From positions 1-64,000 of the forward strand of contig DF237201.1 in assembly GCA_000708835.1 (NCBI GenBank): a stretch of 64,000 nt of DNA, written 5' to 3'. A program made the translations under genes and the position numbers. Each line of letters opens with the position of its first letter. The first letter of the stretch is position 1. The notes beneath the pieces were generated by a model. That model was not told where the DNA came from. It saw only the letters and a list, made by a program, of their open reading frames with translations, and ran no database searches. Positions 48,078-60,700 of the stretch are shown here, piece after piece. The stretch is from Klebsormidium nitens. Lineage: Eukaryota; Plantae; Klebsormidiophyceae.

Positions 48078-50386
48078 TAGCTTTGCTTGCATCTCCTTGA
48101 CCAACTCCTCCATCTCTTGGATATTCGCCTCAGCTTTCCCCCCCTTCCCTCGGGGGCCTCCCGCAATCTTCTTCCGCTTTGCCTGCTGCACCATTCCCGC
48201 TTTCACCGTCCGCTTCTTCGTACTCTCCACCCCTGTCCCCTTGCCTTTCTGCGCTTTTGCCACTTCTTTCTCCTTCGCCTCCAACAACGCCCCCACGATT
48301 CCAGGCCCCAACTTCGCAATCCGCACTCCGAGGTCCTTCGCAAGCTTTGCAGCCCGCTCCGCTTCTGTCTGAAGGTTGATCAGGACGTCGAAGTAGGGAG
48401 GCGAGCGGATCAGAAACGCGACTCCCTCCTTCCAATTGAGCTGCTTCTGTAAAAGCATGAGAAGTGTCTATCAGAAATTGAACTCTCTTATACTACGGTC
48501 AAAAATAAAGGCTGTTTTCCTAGCAGGACATGCCGGCTTTGTACCTCCAGCATCTGCAAAGACTGCGGCCTCGAGCAAGAGAGTTAGTGCATCTTGAAGG
48601 GCATGCCTTGCTACAAAGAAGTCCAAGAGAAGTTCTGCCTTGGCGCCCATGCCAATGGTGCATTTTGCTGTGTACAGTGGGCGCCAATTTCCCATTTGTT
48701 TTGGTTGGCACAATATGGAAGAAAGTGAAGGATAAGTCACGGCTTCCTTGTTGCAGCAGCGTTATCGCCTGAGCACCGTTTCCGATGCTCATAGAGATGC
48801 AGATTTGAATAGCGACGTGGTCCTTCGTGGCCTGCAGGAGTCCTAGAAAATGGCTGCAGATCTTGATTCTGGCTCTGCATCAGATGCGGATCTGTCACTG
48901 GCCTCAGAAACGAAATATCCCAGAACTGGGCAGGATCTTGCAGCCAAGGACTCAAAAGAGCAGCTCAGTGTGGCTCATCTGCCTCTGGTTTTAGTTACAA
49001 ACCTGCCAATGCCTTTAGCTCATCCTCAACCTATGTCTGTGGCAGCTAGCGCATTCGTCCATGTCAAGGTCAACTCGAGTGCAACCCATGTTAAGGTCCA
49101 GCGTGTCACTTCTGGTAAAGCCATAGATCATGCACCGACAGAAGGGAAGGGTTTTAGCATCGGCACCAAGTGGTCCATCAGTTGGTTCAAATGTCTGCCA
49201 ATATGCAGTTATTACAGGGCTGGAGACAATCGGTGCAGAGGGCCTGGAGCTTGGCTCTCAACAGATCGAAAGAAGGCGGCTGACTTGAGAAGCACATCTG
49301 CCATGGTGGCTTTGAATCAGCAATTGTTGAATTGCCTTGCACTAAAGACACGCAAGAAGGAAAGAAGAGAATGCTTCTTACCAGAAGTGTGTCCAGTTGA
49401 CTCTGCACCAGGGCGATGGTGGTCGTCATCCGCTCCAATCTCTCTCCTCTTTGATCCTTGCTCAACTGAACCCCCTTTCCACTTGCCCGTGCAATCCGAA
49501 TTGCCTTCTCGTAGTCGTCAACCTTGTCACAGAGAGTTCTGTTTCTTGCATCCGTTCCTGCTGGGCTTGTCTCAAAGACCACCTTCATTGCAGATGCAAC
49601 AGCCAGCACGTCAGCCTGCCTGTCAAGAGCATAGCTCTTGATGGTGGAATCGTCCTGCACTCCGAACCCAGGCTCGTCGCAGACTGCCTTGAGCTGCGCA
49701 GCAGCATCCTTTGACGTCTGCAGCTGAATGGCCGCATACCTTGAACTCCCTGCAGCAGTGCTCCTGGATGCACCGCCGAGCCCAAAGCGCTTGGCATCAG
49801 CAACGGAACGGGACTTCTTGAGGGCAGAAGTGACCCAAGGAGCTGCCTTCTTTACATCAAACTTCGCAAGACTCGCCAGCGGTCCACTCTTCACGGCCCG
49901 TTGCAGTGCGAGCTGCTCTGCTCTGTAGTCAGATCTACTCAGAGGCGCCAACAGATTGTGAGTTACTCGCGTGCCCTTGGTGTGAATCAAGTCCCAGCAC
50001 ACCTGGCACAATGCCTGGTCGCACTCCCCACAGTACCCAACCGCGTCCTTCCCATGAGGACAGACCGAAAACGACCCTTCACAGGGACAGGTGGGTTTCT
50101 CCACAACAACTTTGGCATGGTTCTGATTGTCACCCCACTTGTGGGGCACCTCCCAGCATGGTGAGCAGAAGCTTGCCACACAACTGGCGCACGAGAATTC
50201 TGCCTCAGCCTCCTTGCAGACAGCACACTTGGGAGGTGGATCCTTTGCCACCCCTCCCGCTGCGAATTCTGGACTGCCCTCATTCTCTCTTCCCCGAGGA
50301 TCAGCATCCTGAGCTCCAGTTGCTGAGAAATCCATGACCGCCACCTTCAGACAAAATAAACGTGTACCCGTTCTGTAAGCAGACAC
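48078..50386 (-). CDS. Double B-box zinc-finger plus coiled-coil coding exons inside the Zator-like element
   Basis: Exon 50386(or ~50335)-49382 with CAVCKE...CASCVASFCSPCWEVPH...H and CPH...YCGECDQALCQVCWDLIH...H, donor GTAAGA. Basic coiled exon 48446-48078 with AG and GTGAG boundaries. Both phase 0. Confidence 0.72.
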
Positions 50387-51885: not shown

Positions 51886-53386
51886 GTGGAGAGAAAGCGG
51901 CGGCGTCCGCTCGAGCAAAGGAGGCAAAAGCCGATAGAGCCGAAGCGACGAGATTGAGAAAAGCGGAGGCGGCTGCAAAGAAGCAACGGGAGGCCGCGCG
52001 GAAGGAGCAAGCTCGGGCAGCCAAGGTTGCATTAGGAGGGGGCAAGCGAAAGAAACTGCCACCGAGGGGGGGGAAGGAGGTTGATGACAACATGAAAGAG
52101 GGGGAGGGTCCCTTGAGGGACTTGTTGTATGGAGGGGTTGGGTCGCCAGCTCCCGCGGCGACGATTGTGTCGGATGAAATTGTGTGTCAGCCAAAGGCCT
52201 TGACGGAGGTCCATAAGGCAGCTAGGGCTATTAATCTCGCTAGGCTGAAGCGAAAGCGTCTTGCATCTCGTTGATATTGTATTGCATTTCAGAAAAATGT
52301 GTTCGTGACCTAGTCAACCACTTTACAGTTGCATTGATAGACTACGAGGAATTGTCGGAGGGCACCTCAAACACGTTGACATTTGATGAAATGAAATGAC
52401 TGGATACATGCATACAATCTTTACAAGTTCGTCATTGCGATCTTCATCAATGTTCCAAAGTAAATGTGGCGTGTCGAATTGATAAGTTGTGCTTCCTGAA
52501 GGCCGCATAATTTGGTTCCGTCATGCATAACTGGCATTGAAACATTGCCAATCACTAAGGCGGCATCTTATTCCGTCCTGCCACACAGCGAGCGACGGTT
52601 GTAATATGATAGAGTATTGGGAGTAATACTGAAAATTCAATCTTAAGCGTCAAGGAGTATTTCACTTGGTCATGTTTCTAATGATCTAGGTTTCATGTTT
52701 TGCTCTGTGGACACTAGCCGGCAGATCGCACAACTGCAGACTGCACAGGCCTATCATTAACACTGATTGGAAGGCTTGCATCCAACGGCTCGCAGAGCAA
52801 TACGGTAGATTCTCATGGCCTGCTCGTGTGTTGTGGACCGTTCAACCAGTTCAGGGCGGGGCACCAAGGTCTGGGGCCTTGTTAAGCTTTGGGCCGCTGT
52901 TGTGTAGCTTGCTAAGAATGGCCGAGGAGGGTCTTTGTCGAGCATCCGCAGGGCCTCGACATCGCGGCGGACGGGGGGGCCGGTAATAGGACCACCGTCG
53001 ATTTGAACCGCCGTACGGAGATACAAACAGTCCCGATGCTAAATCAGGTATATTACGACATTTTTATATCTGACACCCTTATACGGTTGGAAAGAGAATT
53101 CGACGCCCTACATTTTCATATAACACATGCCATACTGAAAATGCTACGAACATCGAGTAATACAAGGTCAAAGGCGAAGGGGGCCGATAATAGGGACAAG
53201 TCCTCCTACTGTCATGTAGACCAGCACTGGCAGATCTCAGAACCATCAGCTGGACACAGTTGAAAGCTCGGGGTTGAAGCTGGGCGCAAGAGGGCTGCAA
53301 CGGGAACGGGTGTGGCAAGAAGGGAAACGGAGGAAGCTGGTGGTCAAGCAAGGAAAGATTTTGAGGACAGACATTTCTGAGGCGCC

Positions 53387-56300
53387 ATGCAAGCTCTGAA
53401 GGAGGTTTTGAGGCGGGCGCCCCACCTTGCAAATCCGATTTGGCAGAGAGCAGTCATTGAAGAGACAGTAGCACCATGCATGAGTTTGGCCCTTAGAAGA
53501 TTACGCAACCTGAGTTCGTCAGAGTGTCGATGTGGACAAATGATGAAGGCGGAGGCGGCTGGGCAAAGAGAATCGTCCTTAAGTGGTGGGTTTATGCGCT
53601 TACTTTGTTTCAGAGGTGGATCTGAGAGTACAAGCACTTTGGATCCGTGCTGCAACATGCAGTGCTTGTTATGGCGATGAGTCAGTCAATGCTGTGGGAG
53701 AACTTTTTGGATCTGGAGTGACTTTGACCACTTCTCGGCGCCCTTGAGAGACTTTGCGCAGGCTCAGTTTGGCGCTCACGAGCGGTCCTGTCGTGTCAAG
53801 CGTCACTAGGCTGTGGATGTTGGGTCCCAGAGGGTCTGGTCACAGAAATACCATTGTCTGCAGAGCTTTTTTTTCTTTTCTTTTCTGCCTCCCAGTGCTA
53901 AGTTGCTTGTGAGACTGTGCAGGGTCCTTCGGGCGGCATCAAAGTAGAGGGTTTGCGGCGGAGGCGGCAGCACTGGCTGATGAAAAGGAGACGTAAGCAG
54001 ACCTCACGTTCGTGCATCATTGTTCTGACTAGATAATATGTGATCATCGTGGCTGTGAGGTGGTTAATGTGGTGTTGGACGTAAGTTCTGACGCTCAGGG
54101 TAGGGCCAATGCGTTGTGCATGGTGCTGTCTCTTGCAGTTCTTTTGTTGTGGATATTCCTGCTAGAGCCCCCTGTGTATCCAGATTCGACATACCACCAT
54201 TATTGCAAAATGCTTTCTATGCATGGCGCGTCTTGTTGTTGAGTATGGTAAAGTAGGGCTCTGCATTTGACACCAGTCTTTATCTGCAGGATCCAGGTTA
54301 CCTTTGTAGACAAGAATGGGGAGGAGAAGCAGATACGAGTCCCGATGGGTGTAAATATGCTACAAGCAGCACATGATAATGACATAGAATTAGAAGGTGA
54401 GTGGGTTACTCTTGCAGTTGGTCTGCAAATCACCGTTGTTGTTTCCTTGTTGTATCTGCGACTCAGGCTTCTGGAAACGATCTTTTGATAATTATTCAAC
54501 TTGAAAGGTGGTGCTATTTAGTATTAACAACTTGCTGCTTCATCCAAAGAGAAGAGTGCGTCACTGTGTATATATCTGCCATAATTTTTCCTTCGTGTTA
54601 GGTGTCCAGGCCTCTGGCATGGCATTTTGGGAGCAATCCTCTGATGGCCTGGCAACTTGAGTGGTGGTGCTATTTGCAAGCTTCTGTTTTTAAAAGGGCA
54701 GAGAGGTTTCCATTTTGTGAAGTCACAGTGGGAAAGTCCGCTGGAACTTTTTGTTCATACCTTGCGTCCTAGGCGTCTGGCACGGCTTTTTGGAAGCAGC
54801 CGTCTGATGTCTGACTTGATTGCTGGTTCACAGACAAGCAGCTGTTGAACCAGCAGACTGCTCATGTGGGGTTATCTTGCAGGCAAGATTGTTTGATGCC
54901 TTAGTTGGTGGATCTCACCGTTCAGCATATCAAGCTGCTCACTCATTGGCTTCTGGAGGGGTGCTAACAGGATGAATTGAATGGAGCGATGGGGAATGAG
55001 GATGGACTCTGAGCATCTGCTGGCACGTCTTGTTTAACGTATGAGCTTGGAGGGCTCGAACAGTGGCGATGATGGATCCTGTTTGAGCACCAAAAGCTCA
55101 TGTGATTTTTGACCGGGGATCTGAAGCCGAAGCGTATGCGTTGGTCCCCCAGGTTTGGCCGAGCTCCTTCTGGAAGTCCACAATGTCTAGAGCCGATTTG
55201 TGTCATGGTCTTTATTGCCGATGAAGGTTTGGATCGCTTCCTGCGCGTAAAGTCTTTCCCCGAAGATTTCTTGTTGAGCTGTGTCGCTCGTTGGCACCCT
55301 TGCCTTTCAGACTCCTGGGACAGTCCTTTCCGGTCGCTCATGCTCGGGTGGGCTGCTTGGCAGAAGAAGTCCCAGACATTGTCTGTGCCGCCTAATACTT
55401 GCCGCCATTGCATTTTGGGCGGGCAAGCTTCGCTTCGGCGCAAGATCTTGAATGATTTTACTGGATTTTTGAGAACCAACTTCATACCCGTATCCACGGC
55501 TGGTGCTTCTGTCAGTTGTCTTACCCCGTTTCTCCGTCATTGGAGATTGCAGCAAAGTAATGTCTTGTCTTGCTTGGAGATGTGCCGACCTTCTCTATTG
55601 CTCTATCCTTACGGAACCCTCTGTTTTGGAGTGTCGAGGAAGACAAAAAGAGGCAAAAGCGCGTTTTGACAGATGTCCTGAGATGACCGGGTTGCCTTCG
55701 CTTGTTTAATCTGTTAACCCTGATCAGCAGGAGCCAACTCGTGTCGGTTCTGCCAGGATCTGCTTTACTCACTAAAAACTGCTGTCTATGTTTCAGCGAC
55801 CATCTCTGCTTGCACTGTTTAGTTGAACGGAACCGAGAAGATGGTAAAATTCCCAGATCATGGAAGATAGCGATCTTCGAGAAAGTCAATCATTACACAA
55901 ACCCCTCCGCTTCGTGTCTAGGTTCGACCGTTTCGGCTGATCGGTACTGTTCCGTTCTCCAGCTAATCTGCGAATGTAGATCATTTATCGCCCTTGTGGT
56001 GCAGGCTAAAGCCAGCATAAAGCTGAAGACTTGCTGATATAGTGCTTCGAACCCCGCAGGTGCTTGCGAAGGGTCTCTTGCGTGTTCAACATGCCACGTC
56101 ATCATAATGGTAAGCCCGTCCGTCCTCGCCCTTCCTCTGTCGTTTGGCAACCTATGTGCACCCTAACGCGCCCCAGAGACACTTTGTCTAGTCTGTAGAT
56201 GTTTGCAGAGAATGTGGCCGTTGGAAATTTCGATTGTGTCAACATTGGTAGGGACGACGTTTGGTCAATCTCTTTATTTGTGTTCAAGATTTTACAAGCA

Positions 56301-57733
56301 AGTGGGGGCATTTGTGGGCCGAACTCAGTCTCCTCTTGTCCGTTCGTCTCTTGGGATGTAGAGTCTACCAAGGTCAGTAGCATCTGAAGTCAGCTGCACA
56401 GGCTCCGGAAGCGATCCCAAGCTTTACAGCTTGTTGACCATCCTTCGACCGGTGCTAGTTGCAAACCTTCCCACCCACTTGAGGTTTTCTGACGTTTCTA
56501 ATTTCTAGCCCTTTCTACGAAGGGCACAAATCGATCTTGGTCAAAGATTAACTTTTGGGCAAAGTTTTGGGCGGTTTGCATGACTTGACGTGGAGCCAAA
56601 ATCCTGCTCGTTCCTTTCTTGTGGACCGTGCATTTGAAAGCTACCACAGAGCAGACAGTGGGGCCATCAGCTCTTGCGTCCACATTGGTTGGAGTCTCGA
56701 GTTAAATTTCCCCACAACATCCTTATCGACTTGATGAACCGCAAAGGTAGAAGTGGAACTGCGTTTTGTTGCGCACATGCTTCCTGTTTGCTCTCTCTCT
56801 AAAGGGTATCTTGAGTGTTTGTAGTCTGTCTGCGCAGGACCAGGACTTGTACGATAAAATGGAGGAACCGTCAGACGAAGAGAACGATATGCTGGACCTC
56901 GCTTTCGGGCTCACAGAAACGTAAGCAACCTCTCTTTCTGCTGTTAGGCCACTTTTTTGCCTAGTTGAGGTCTTGGTGTTGGTGGGGCAGCGGAGCGGGC
57001 CGCAGGTGCTTAGCAGGGTCTCTCTCTAATGCGGATGACGATGTAAGGGCCCAAAGAAGATATGGTTTGAAGATCAGTGTTCCTGGTTGAGGGGCATCCT
57101 CCTGCTTGGAGGAACGAGTGTGATCCGTCCGTGTCCTTGAAGATCGTGAACAGTCGTTTGCAGTCGTTTGCTAAAGGCTATCCTAGCATCAGTGGTACAA
57201 GAGCATTTGCGGTGGTCGCTGATAAACAGGCGTTGAAAGTTTTGAGTTCAGAAGCTAGTCTCACTTCCTTCGTCTCACTCGGACTTGAAACAAAACTTCT
57301 TTCGCGATTGGACAGACAAGTGATTCTTGTCAAAAGTGAAGTGATTCTGGTTTTTGTCAGTCTGCTACTCCGATAGCGAGTTTCCGTCTCAGCGTTTTTC
57401 TACAATAAGTTTCAGCTCGCCTAAGATTCGCCTCATTGCGGCCTCTCGTCTTGACAGGTCTCGCCTAGGCTGTCAAGTCGTTGCCTCCCCGGAGTTTGAC
57501 GGCATGCGCTTGTATCTCCCTTCCGTACGTGACGTCAGAGGTTAGCCTAACCACCAACAATCCTTCGGAAGATGCCTATTGACACCAGGCTCATTCTTTG
57601 GCCCTGTCTGCATGCCAGGTCGCGGCTGGGGTGTCAAGTAGTAGCGAGTCCGGAGCTAGATGGGATGAAGCTCCGGCTACCGGCCGCGACTAGGAACTTT
57701 TATGTGGACGGACATAAACCGGAGCCGCATTGA
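53387..57733 (+). CDS. MFDX: Mitochondrial adrenodoxin-type [2Fe-2S] ferredoxin with two alternative last exons
   Basis: Presequence exons (53387 onward and ~53923-53992; boundaries tentative), then 54290-54396 (IQVTFVDK...ELEG), 56060-56109 ([16 protein letters not shown]), 56838-56920 ([15 protein letters not shown]), then 57458-57545 or 57619-57733 (SRLGCQ...). Confidence 0.93.
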
Positions 57734-60700
57734 GGTTGGGGTAAGCATAGGCATGCAGTCTATGCTCTTTGGGGTAGAGCTAGCGGAAAGGTTCTGCACA
57801 CACAATTGCTCGCATAGACACATGTCTGAACACGTGGAAGATATCTACAGTTGTCTGCAGTCTCTGTGGTTCTAAGAAAACATTCATTGTGAAATGGAGC
57901 GGATCATATTTTCACATCAGAGGTTTTTGATATTCTCTCGATCTTCTTCGTCAGAGTCATGTGTCGCATGATATGTGCCTCCTACGACCATCCCGACTGA
58001 TCGTCGAAGCGTTTCAGGTTGTTTTTGCTCTGCGTTTGTCGGTTTGTTCCTCTGGCTTGTCCATCGCCGCAAGTTGCGGTTAGTTTCCTCTTGTGATTGT
58101 CGTAATGTTGTGACACTTCTTTGGCCTCTCCCTCCAAGGCTTGCGTCCAACCCCAGCTTTTTGCTGAGCATGCCTTGCTGCGATGTGGAAATTTGGAAGG
58201 CTTCTGTTCGTCGGATTTGTCCGTCCTTCCATCCTTCCATTCTATTGCTCAGGCGCGCCAACGCCCGACTTTTGACACGTCGATTGCAGCATCAGGCGTA
58301 ATGAGCATGTCTTTTCGCAGATCGTAAGTAGACCGTAGGTGCTGGACCGACTTACGAGTGAGTCAAATGCTGTCTACTTTCTCAAAGAGCTGTTGCGCTT
58401 GAAGTGGCTTTGAAACTGTTCCCTCAACGGTTGCAAGTTGGCATTAAGTGCCACCACCCATCGTTGACCCCGTTTTGCATCGACGGGGTCAGCGTTGGGC
58501 ACTGCCCTAACTTGTGCAGACAATGGTTCCTGAAGTCCTGCAAACCTTGAAGTTTCTGAGCTTTGTACTAAAGCCATCACGCATGTTAGCCTGGTCAATT
58601 ATAGCAGTGAGAGAGCAGAGTACATTTTGGGCGCCCCAGTTGAAGCCCAAACATTCTTCCAGGACTTTGAGGCTATACTAGCTGTGATGCTGTCGACTAA
58701 GTGTCTACAGCTTTTCTTGAGACTTTTTCTCACCAAGATTTGGAGACGTGCCTTTCAAGTTCTGAGAGTCCACCGATATACCTCCTTTCGTTTCAGCAAT
58801 GGTTGCCGATCAGAGGCAAAGGCTAGTCATCTGTCCTGATTACGTGTTATGCTTGACCCGTTAGTCCTACTGCGTTTGGCTTGGTTGTGGAGCTCAAGAC
58901 TGGGAGCTTAAGAGAGTTGTTTCTTAAGGAGTGATTGGGTTCGACAATCTGCATTCATGGAGCGCAGGAATGGCAGCGCAGCCCGAACTTCATCGTCCTG
59001 ACTTTCTAAAAGGCCCTCAACAGTCGCTCAAGCAGCTGGCAATGATGCGCCCGCAATGCTCCGCCTTCAGCTGATAGCAAAGGCGGATGTCTCTTCAAGA
59101 TGGCTCTTCAAGCTGACACAGAAGCCGGATTCGCTGATCTTTAATTTCCGATAATCCTTCCTTTTCAATTCGCAACCCCGTCATTGGCGGGGCTCTTTTT
59201 GGTTGGACGATCGAACTGACGTCCTGTGCGGTTTGTCCCTTTTCTGAGGCTACCGCTGACGTGAGCAGACAATATATCAATTCGAACTTGATTATGCGTT
59301 GGCTTAGCGTCGTTTTCAACGATACGTTGCCAGTGGAAGCGCCTGTTTCTACTCACGATGTCCTCGCTGCTCTCCCAATAAGCTCGAACCTCAAGCATTA
59401 AGTCTCGGCGCTTTTGAGAGTGACAACCGCCGTGCCTTACCCGCTTTCTAGGAACTAGGAAGGTGGCAATGACCAGACTGAAAGCTGGGTTTGAGTTTCT
59501 TCCGTAGGAGCTCAACGATATTTCTTGCTTATGAAGCCAACTTCTCTGCTTCCGTCTTTGCTGCTATTCGTTTCATCCTTCTGAAAATCCAACTTGGATA
59601 TAGGGCCGCTCCCGTCCTTTCGTCCGCCGTGCTATTCCGCAGCCCTAGCAATTGCAGCTGCCCATGTGAACGGCCCGGTAACGTGGTTGGCTGCAAGTAC
59701 AACGTCTCATATAACCTGAAAGCCTGCTGTGAGATTAATTTTACCTGTTTGTTCTCCCTTCCGCTTCAACCTGGTTCAGCCTTGTGCATTGAGTGACTGT
59801 GTCGTGTGCGATGCGCCTCAAGATGTCCGCCTCAACGGGTTGTGTCCGTTGCACATCGGCGTTGCGAATTAGCTCTGATTCCCAACCAAAGGTGTTTCAC
59901 TTCCCGCGCCGAGAGTATTCTATCTAGGAGGAGGGACGTGTCGCGTATGAGATCTAAGTTCTGGCAGCTTGCATCTCCATCCTTCTGAGAAGCACCTTCT
60001 GTCACGAGATCAGTCCATCTGTTGCTAAATCACTTTACTGAGATCTAGGTCCTGTTGTAGTCCATGTAATTTGAAGAGCGACCAGTATTTTTTCAGTGCG
60101 ACTTGGTCTGCTGTGCTGGAAGTCTCGGATGACCGCCCAATGAAGTGTATCTCTGATGTTCCTGTGGTTGGCTCACTTTGACCCACATCGGCCCCAGGCT
60201 TCCGCTGTTTCAGATGGCTGTGATGACCAGTGCTTGTCTCCAGAGACTCCACGACAGCAGAGAATTCTGACCAATGCCTCTTAAGCCCAGTGAATCTGCT
60301 TAAGGCGACTGTTGTTCTCAGTACGTCCTCAGGCAGAAAAGCTGTTGCATGAATTTATCTAGTCTACTTGTTGTCAAGTATCATCCTCAAGATTACTTGG
60401 ATACGAGACCGGACCTGAAGCAGTGAGGGGAAAGAGAAGGCAGGAACCAAGAAGCGGGCGGTCGCTCAATCTTTGCAAATCTTAAAGAGTGGCAGACTGG
60501 CTTCAGAATTCTGCAGCAATCACTTAGGATCCTCTGAAGGATCCTCGACATCCTTCATCTTTTCCCGGGGTTGGCATCCTGAGGTCAAATGAACATGCAG
60601 CGTCTCTTTGGATGACCCCGCGGGGGTCAGTAAGTTCACTCACGTAACGGAAATACATGCATTCTGAGTCGATCGTAGGATATATGCATTGACACTTTGA

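Follow-up and report, generated by a model that had tools for sequence, protein, structure and literature searches.

Work published between 2023 and 2025 has made the C-terminal tail of FDX2 the focus of two problems, namely how FDX2 and FDX1 choose different targets and how ferredoxin and frataxin regulate each other on NFS1. Cryo-EM of the core assembly complex shows the 15 C-terminal residues of FDX2 without order in the distal state; in the proximal state they are ordered on NFS1, where tail residues Asn175, Phe176, Val178 and Asp179 mediate docking (PMC11618653). FDX2 lacking 1-12 C-terminal residues keeps its cluster, is reduced by FDXR and makes [2Fe-2S] in vitro; at high ferredoxin, truncations of 1-10 residues outperform the wild type, the 12-residue truncation doing so only slightly and being slower at low ferredoxin concentration (PMC11618653). 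C-terminal residues also help to define the target specificity of FDX1 versus FDX2, according to a statement in the same paper that cites Schulz 2023 (PMC11618653). FDX2 and frataxin compete for one NFS1 site, the affinity being provided by residues of helix F, and the FDX2 tail, especially Asp179, acts as a repressor of persulfide transfer in that it restrains the mobile loop of NFS1, tail mutants being faster when FDX2 is in excess (PMC12804074). Both problems have so far been approached only through engineered truncations and point mutants.

In the literature searched, human FDX2, plant MFDX and yeast Yah1 are encoded by one or two genes, each of which specifies a single C-terminus, and no report was found, within the limits of that search, of a mitochondrial ferredoxin gene making two C-terminal isoforms. 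The gene described here, from the alga Klebsormidium nitens, shares with these proteins the cluster-binding pattern and the acidic helix, and its isoform B carries a complete FDX2-type tail, but the same gene also gives rise to a tail-less form, isoform A. Two other described systems come close to it in layout. As in splicing that stems from tandem exon duplication, where homologous exons are used in a mutually exclusive manner (PMC6071210, PMC7797038), adjacent homologous coding exons have acceptors of their own and one of them is translated per mRNA; the K. nitens case differs in that the duplicated exon is terminal and that exclusivity is brought about by the stop codon of the proximal copy, not by skipping. 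The chloroplast APXII gene of spinach and tobacco (PMC9434269) is likewise a plant-lineage gene whose two organellar isoforms differ only in the C-terminus, through alternative 3'-terminal processing, but neither of its terminal exons is a copy of the other, and the feature that they alter is membrane anchoring, not a partner-docking tail. Ferredoxins of this type and alternative splicing born from tandem exon duplication are both already known.

For the locus as a whole we favour, as the probable reading, an anciently duplicated terminal exon with two acceptors, from which a major FDX2-type isoform and a minor, tail-less but working ferredoxin isoform are made. This reading starts from observations, namely the gene model, the two splice junctions, an A transcript that is continuous and two exon copies whose sequences are constrained; its limits are set by an A tail that matches no motif, by a constraint signal that comprises 22 codons and by evidence that lies at the level of RNA and sequence.

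The gene and its predicted products

The DNA comes from K. nitens contig DF237201.1 (assembly GCA_000708835.1), of which a stretch of 64,000 nt, hereafter the window, was analysed. The ferredoxin gene lies on the plus strand and consists, from the ATG at 53387, of five shared exons followed by either of two terminal segments, referred to here as exon A and exon B (Table 1). RNA evidence was drawn from the contigs of four runs (X1, X5, X7 and X19) belonging to four studies, aligned to 53350-59250; all four runs yield spliced contigs on this interval, which marks them as RNA, and together they confirm every intron, with GT..AG borders throughout. The 5'UTR reaches at least 100 nt upstream of 53350. 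At the end of exon 5 a single donor, GTAAGC from 56921, feeds both acceptors, and a motif search places candidate branch points for acceptor B within the spacer (TTGAC at 57579 and CTCAT at 57590). The preliminary description had proposed two tandem segments, each behind an AG acceptor in the right phase, and this was borne out at 57458 (28 residues) and 57619 (37 residues); after splicing, the products amount to 207 aa for isoform B and 198 aa for isoform A. Upstream of the ferredoxin gene, the minus strand of the window holds a long ORF (49187-50386) with Cys-rich, B-box-like motifs.

Table 1. Coordinates of the ferredoxin gene within the window, with the RNA joints that delimit its exons.
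Feature	Positions	Strand	Content and RNA support
Exon 1	53387..53585	+	start codon and N-terminal extension (presumed mitochondrial presequence); joint 53584>53922 (cut +1) in 4/4 runs
Exon 2	53923..53992	+	joints 53584>53922 and 53992>54290 in 4/4 runs
Exon 3	54290..54396	+	ferredoxin fold begins (...IELEG); joints in 4/4 runs
Exon 4	56060..56109	+	cluster-binding loop with three Cys ligands (C-x5-C-x2-C); joints 54394>56058 (cut +2) and 56108>56837 (cut +1) in 4/4 runs
Exon 5	56838..56920	+	acidic helix, common to both isoforms
Segment A (exon A)	57458..57545	+	proximal acceptor AG 57456-57457; 28 codons and TAG 57543-57545
Spacer	57546..57618	+	73 nt; belongs to the 3'UTR when acceptor A is used and to the end of the intron when acceptor B is used
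Segment B (exon B)	57619..57733	+	distal acceptor AG 57617-57618; 37 codons and TGA 57731-57733
Common 3'UTR	57734..57922	+	contigs of 4/4 runs stop at 57910-57922; depth zero beyond 58078

Judged by its sequence, the gene, a nuclear one, encodes an adrenodoxin/ISC-type [2Fe-2S] ferredoxin of the mitochondrial type. Both isoforms share an N-terminal extension of about 90 residues, the three-Cys loop and the acidic, partner-binding helix, and all four Cys ligands are present, the fourth being supplied by the SRLGCQ of whichever terminal segment is used. A mitochondrial location of the protein would fit both the family and the conserved N-terminal extension, and from the family one would likewise expect binding of a [2Fe-2S] cluster and reduction by the mitochondrial ferredoxin reductase. 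Pfam and NCBIfam returned no matches for exon-sized pieces, which are too short for these profiles.

The preliminary description had taken exon B for an FDX2/MFDX-type tail, and this assignment holds: all 37 residues align to residues 85-121 of human FDX2 (entry 8rmc; E 2.8e-13), and the tail TRNFxVDGHxPxPH is complete, including its N, F, V, D and terminal H. Metagenome contigs gave further matches to isoform B, in ferredoxin genes that are fungal-type, FDX2-type or bacterial, with E values from 1e-14 to 1e-32. Isoform B, the major form, can accordingly be classed from these alignments as a putative canonical FDX2/plant-MFDX-type protein; neither its exon B ORF nor its exon B peptide had a record under exact look-up. 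Exon A aligns with Yah1 and FDX2 over its first 23 residues only; the fourth Cys ligand and the Pro that follows the last strand are present, after which seven unrelated residues take the place of the FDX2 tail. In searches of solved structures and representative sequences, the A tail matched no known motif.

Attempts to find an A-like segment elsewhere differed in how much they could reveal. A word search with exon A gave no candidates, a blank that is uninformative because ordinary ferredoxins sharing SRLGCQV were not returned either; a search of representative sequences with exon A (30 aa) gave 0 matches and is equally uninformative, the query being short and isoforms being collapsed at 50% identity. 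A metagenome scan returned distant ferredoxins only, all of them lacking both an A-like tail and a second terminal exon.

Age of the duplication and constraint on both copies

Exons A and B are adjacent homologous segments that stand in the same phase relative to the donor at 56920. The first 22 codons of the two copies agree in 18 residues, and 13 of the 18 are encoded by a different codon in each copy; this recount gave the very figures first reported. The two copies differ at 25 of 66 bases, 16 of the 25 being third positions, and a likeness of this kind goes far past what chance would give: when 25 substitutions were placed at random, an average of 8 residues survived, and in no case 18. 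Homology is confined to these 66 bases, as both the upstream intron ends (35-100 nt before the acceptors) and the tails after codon 22 resemble each other at shuffle level, and no third copy of the exon was found within the 64-kb window. A hexamer common to both copies, CTCATT, located 23-26 nt before each AG, was considered as well and set aside as not significant.

By the Nei-Gojobori method, A and B have diverged to a pS of 0.84, which is saturated, and a pN of 0.21. The four replacements (F/L, R/K, Y/R and S/A) fall at positions that are variable among solved ferredoxins too, and SRLGCQ, DG and LP are unchanged between the copies. Divergence from a common sequence was simulated over a range of times and with two transition biases, and an outcome was counted when 18 or more residues had stayed identical and 13 or more codons had changed synonymously. 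With exon A neutral since the duplication, this outcome had a P of at most 2.5e-4; with an omega of 0.3 on the A branch the value was about 0.01, roughly ten times worse than with 0.1, and with both copies constrained (omega 0.1 and 0.05) it was about 0.1. Because synonymous sites are saturated, residues are kept and a neutral A is rejected by the simulation, exon A evidently coded for protein during most of the period that followed the duplication, a conclusion that covers 22 codons and is compatible with a recent relaxation.

How old, then, is the duplication? One relative was recovered, by a protein word search with exon 1: a Logan contig of SRR23617307 (L001:185-2799) that carries the orthologue in a related alga, with exons 1-4, and ends before exon 5. 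Within the N-terminal extension, residues 1-31 are nearly identical in the two algae and the remainder is divergent; exon 3, which can also be aligned to other ferredoxins, is 94% identical, and intron 1 is still alignable. Over exons 1 and 3 the pS between the two genes is about 0.38. Since the pS of 0.84 between A and B is well above this value, the tandem duplication of the last coding exon is old, and the split from the relative younger than it; exon A, if maintained, should therefore exist in the relative's species as well. A further word search that started from exon 1 of the relative, with a length range spanning 198-207 aa, brought nothing new. The proposal of an old duplication with both copies constrained as protein is thus upheld by the saturated pS, the low pN and the rejection of a neutral A.

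It might still be argued that exon A is an old duplicate in relaxation, which residual recognition of its acceptor continues to bring into mRNA, the protein with the truncated tail being a tolerated by-product without a role of its own. Such a view could point to the status of A as a minor form that is absent from the contigs of X19, to a tail without motif for which the protein searches found no counterpart, and to the four replacements and the lost tail, which could represent early decay. Nevertheless, 18 of the 22 residues and all invariant positions (SRLGCQ, DG and LP) were retained while synonymous sites became saturated, neutrality of A is rejected (P <= 2.5e-4) and an omega of 0.3 fits about ten times worse than 0.1. 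The frame, moreover, is open and ends soon after the structural proline, and a usage of about 30% in two independent studies is high for noise. On this evidence we regard relaxation as unlikely, albeit deserving of serious attention.

Use of the two acceptors in RNA

Both acceptors had been expected to be used, and they are. Junction 56920>57619, which leads into exon B, occurs in all four runs (contig depths 155, 102, 32 and 90), and junction 56920>57458, which leads into exon A and has GT..AG borders, occurs in two runs from two studies, X1 (depth 66.8) and X7 (14.9); in the other two of the four runs examined, X5 and X19, no contig with the A junction was found. The depths are additive: in X1 the exon-5 contig has a depth of 224, close to what the A junction (67) and the B junction (155) add up to, and in X7 the corresponding values are 45, 15 and 32. 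In X5 the upstream depth minus that of the B junction (117.9 - 102) equals the depth of a contig covering exon A (15.5), which suggests an A share of about 13%, and in the contigs of X19 the exon A sequence is absent altogether. The share of A in A+B thus comes to about 30%, 31%, 13% and 0% by data set, figures that are indications only, contig depth being a crude measure.

Low-depth contigs (3-7, against 45-230 for exons) extend over most of introns 3, 4 and 5 in X1, X5 and X19 (54370-57487); they are unspliced precursor or traces of DNA, and the depth of exon A (15-67) is to be judged against this intronic background of 3-7. One intronic contig of X7 (depth 4.4) carries a single C>A difference at 57305, which may be an error or a strain difference.

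In X1 and X7, A-specific contigs run unbroken from 57458 to 57648, crossing the A stop and the spacer on the way, and merge with the B path inside exon B. In the A mRNA, exon B is consequently 3'UTR, which amounts to about 375 nt as compared with 187 nt in the B form, and the A stop lies in the last exon, with no exon junction downstream of it. Because the A transcript is not spliced again beyond its acceptor, its stop, the spacer and exon B all being retained, the event is an alternative 3' splice-site choice between acceptors 161 nt apart. Of the "alternative last exons" of the preliminary description, the choice of acceptor has therefore survived and the separateness of the exons has not, as the A transcript retains the spacer and exon B as 3'UTR. 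The same description had singled out a GTACGT at 57525 for checking as a donor that might splice exon A out again; no joint starts there in any of the four runs, so exon A was not seen to be removed through it. It also follows from the unbroken contigs that the strict exclusion at the mRNA level known from mutually exclusive exons does not apply to this gene, in which exclusion holds at the protein level only, and, in contrast to those systems, no competing RNA structure was found at the two acceptors.

How common is the A form beyond these runs? A second index search, made with exon A and the spacer alone, found this stretch complete (1.00) in 18 runs from 5 studies. For a wider stretch, the count of 31-letter words predicts a share of 0.38 for A+B mRNA without the intron and of 0.26 for B-only mRNA, and some of the 18 runs have a wider-stretch share of 0.36, matching the former; two organism-B runs have a share of 0.23 and are not among the matches to exon A plus spacer. 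The A form is thus widespread, though not universal, among the data sets. The organism-B runs (X19 and X20) contain the gene at 100% identity but zero words of exon A plus spacer; the share of these words is 47% in X32 (organism C) and 20% in X33 (organism D).

The RNA data also bear on the idea that the A splice is regulatory at the level of RNA, pre-mRNA being diverted to an mRNA with a longer 3'UTR and a different stability or translation, and the protein mattering little. The ratio of A to B does vary by data set, from about 30% and 31% through 13% to 0% of A, and the 3'UTRs do differ in length (375 nt for A, 187 nt for B); indeed, a 3'UTR of 375 nt might make the A form unstable. Regulation of this kind, however, needs no conserved frame, and the coding constraint on exon A is strong; neither is there a stable or otherwise unusual RNA structure around the two acceptors (z = -0.49), nor a junction past the A stop that could trigger classical decay. 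We therefore consider it quite improbable that the A splice serves the RNA alone. That the A junction should be an artefact of assembly chimeras or DNA contamination is scarcely credible: although its support comes from assembled contigs only, the RNA nature of the runs was guessed and the junction side measures 27 letters, fully spliced contigs across five introns identify the runs as RNA, two studies show the identical junction, its GT..AG borders exact, junction depths sum to the depth of the upstream exon, and a skip of 537 nt is impossible from DNA.

A predicted ferredoxin without the FDX2 tail

What could a ferredoxin of this type do once its tail is gone? In the mechanism that we propose for the favoured reading, the donor after 56920 would be joined either to 57619, giving the major mRNA and the 207-aa protein, or to 57458, giving a minor mRNA (roughly 0-30%) whose translation would stop at 57543, so that the spacer and exon B would trail as 3'UTR behind the frame of a 198-aa product. 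Isoform A would fold into a reducible ferredoxin with properties like those of human FDX2 truncated at the C-terminus by engineering: the reductase would still donate electrons to it, but no tail would lock onto the NFS1 mobile loop. It would then work either for other clients or for the Fe-S assembly complex, in the latter case free of tail repression. The splice ratio could then tune mitochondrial ferredoxin function. Since isoform A keeps helix F, encoded by the shared exon 5, and lacks every docking residue of the tail, it is most likely a working ferredoxin without tail-dependent docking and repression.

These thoughts lean on the engineered FDX2 truncations and tail mutants (PMC11618653, PMC12804074). 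Isoform A is likewise devoid of the equivalents of Asn175, Phe176, Val178, Asp179 and the terminal His, as the longest truncations are, and it also keeps the cluster ligands, helix F and, as predicted, the fold. It differs from them in being a natural splice product to which seven unrelated residues are added.

A bolder version would be that one gene provides two functionally distinct mitochondrial ferredoxins, an FDX2-type form whose tail docks on the NFS1 mobile loop and holds it back, and a natural tail-less form that is free of this effect or works for other clients, for instance in the synthesis of lipoyl, biotin or haem a, their ratio being set by a condition-dependent choice of acceptor. 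Such a choice would explain why the A share spreads over roughly 0-30% between studies; taken as a whole, we hold this version to be tentative and, on balance, doubtful.

What would be the significance of a natural and selected isoform that dispenses with precisely this tail and retains the remainder of the protein? It would amount to an evolutionary experiment on tail function, performed in a lineage sister to land plants, and the gene would offer a simple system for asking what a tail-less ferredoxin is good for. For the evolution of splicing, it adds a well-documented case, from outside the animals and with RNA support, of a duplicated terminal exon used via alternative acceptors.

The pair of isoforms also invites comparison with animal FDX1 and FDX2, two genes whose products have different tails and different clients; the likeness lies in having two mitochondrial ferredoxins that differ mainly at the C-terminus. 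The comparison ends where the origin of the tails is concerned, exon A being a copy of an FDX2-type exon and not of an FDX1-type one. The preliminary description had called the A tail reminiscent of FDX1, a suggestion that the scores do not support: among solved structures the best matches of exon A are Yah1 and FDX2, and adrenodoxin is the weakest of those listed (E = 1.8). A positive control, the FDX1-type terminal exon at L002:3377-3469, found adrenodoxin as its best match over 30 residues with an E of 2.7e-7. The end of exon A (...LPSVRDVRG) and that of the control (...IPEGLSDARG) have only P, V, D and R in line, with one gap needed, and we give little weight to this apparent P..V.D.R resemblance, which was chosen after the fact. 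The body of exon A, in turn, is identical to exon B at 18 of 22 positions as against 12 of 21 for the FDX1-type exon of the control, which is why we take it for a copy of the B-type exon.

The control itself belongs to a eukaryotic, intron-containing ferredoxin gene on a metagenome contig (L002:2875-3469; Ga0224511_10069584); in the 360 nt that follow its last exon no second terminal exon was found. That last exon is clearly of the FDX1/adrenodoxin type, so that FDX1-type tails exist outside the solved animal proteins.
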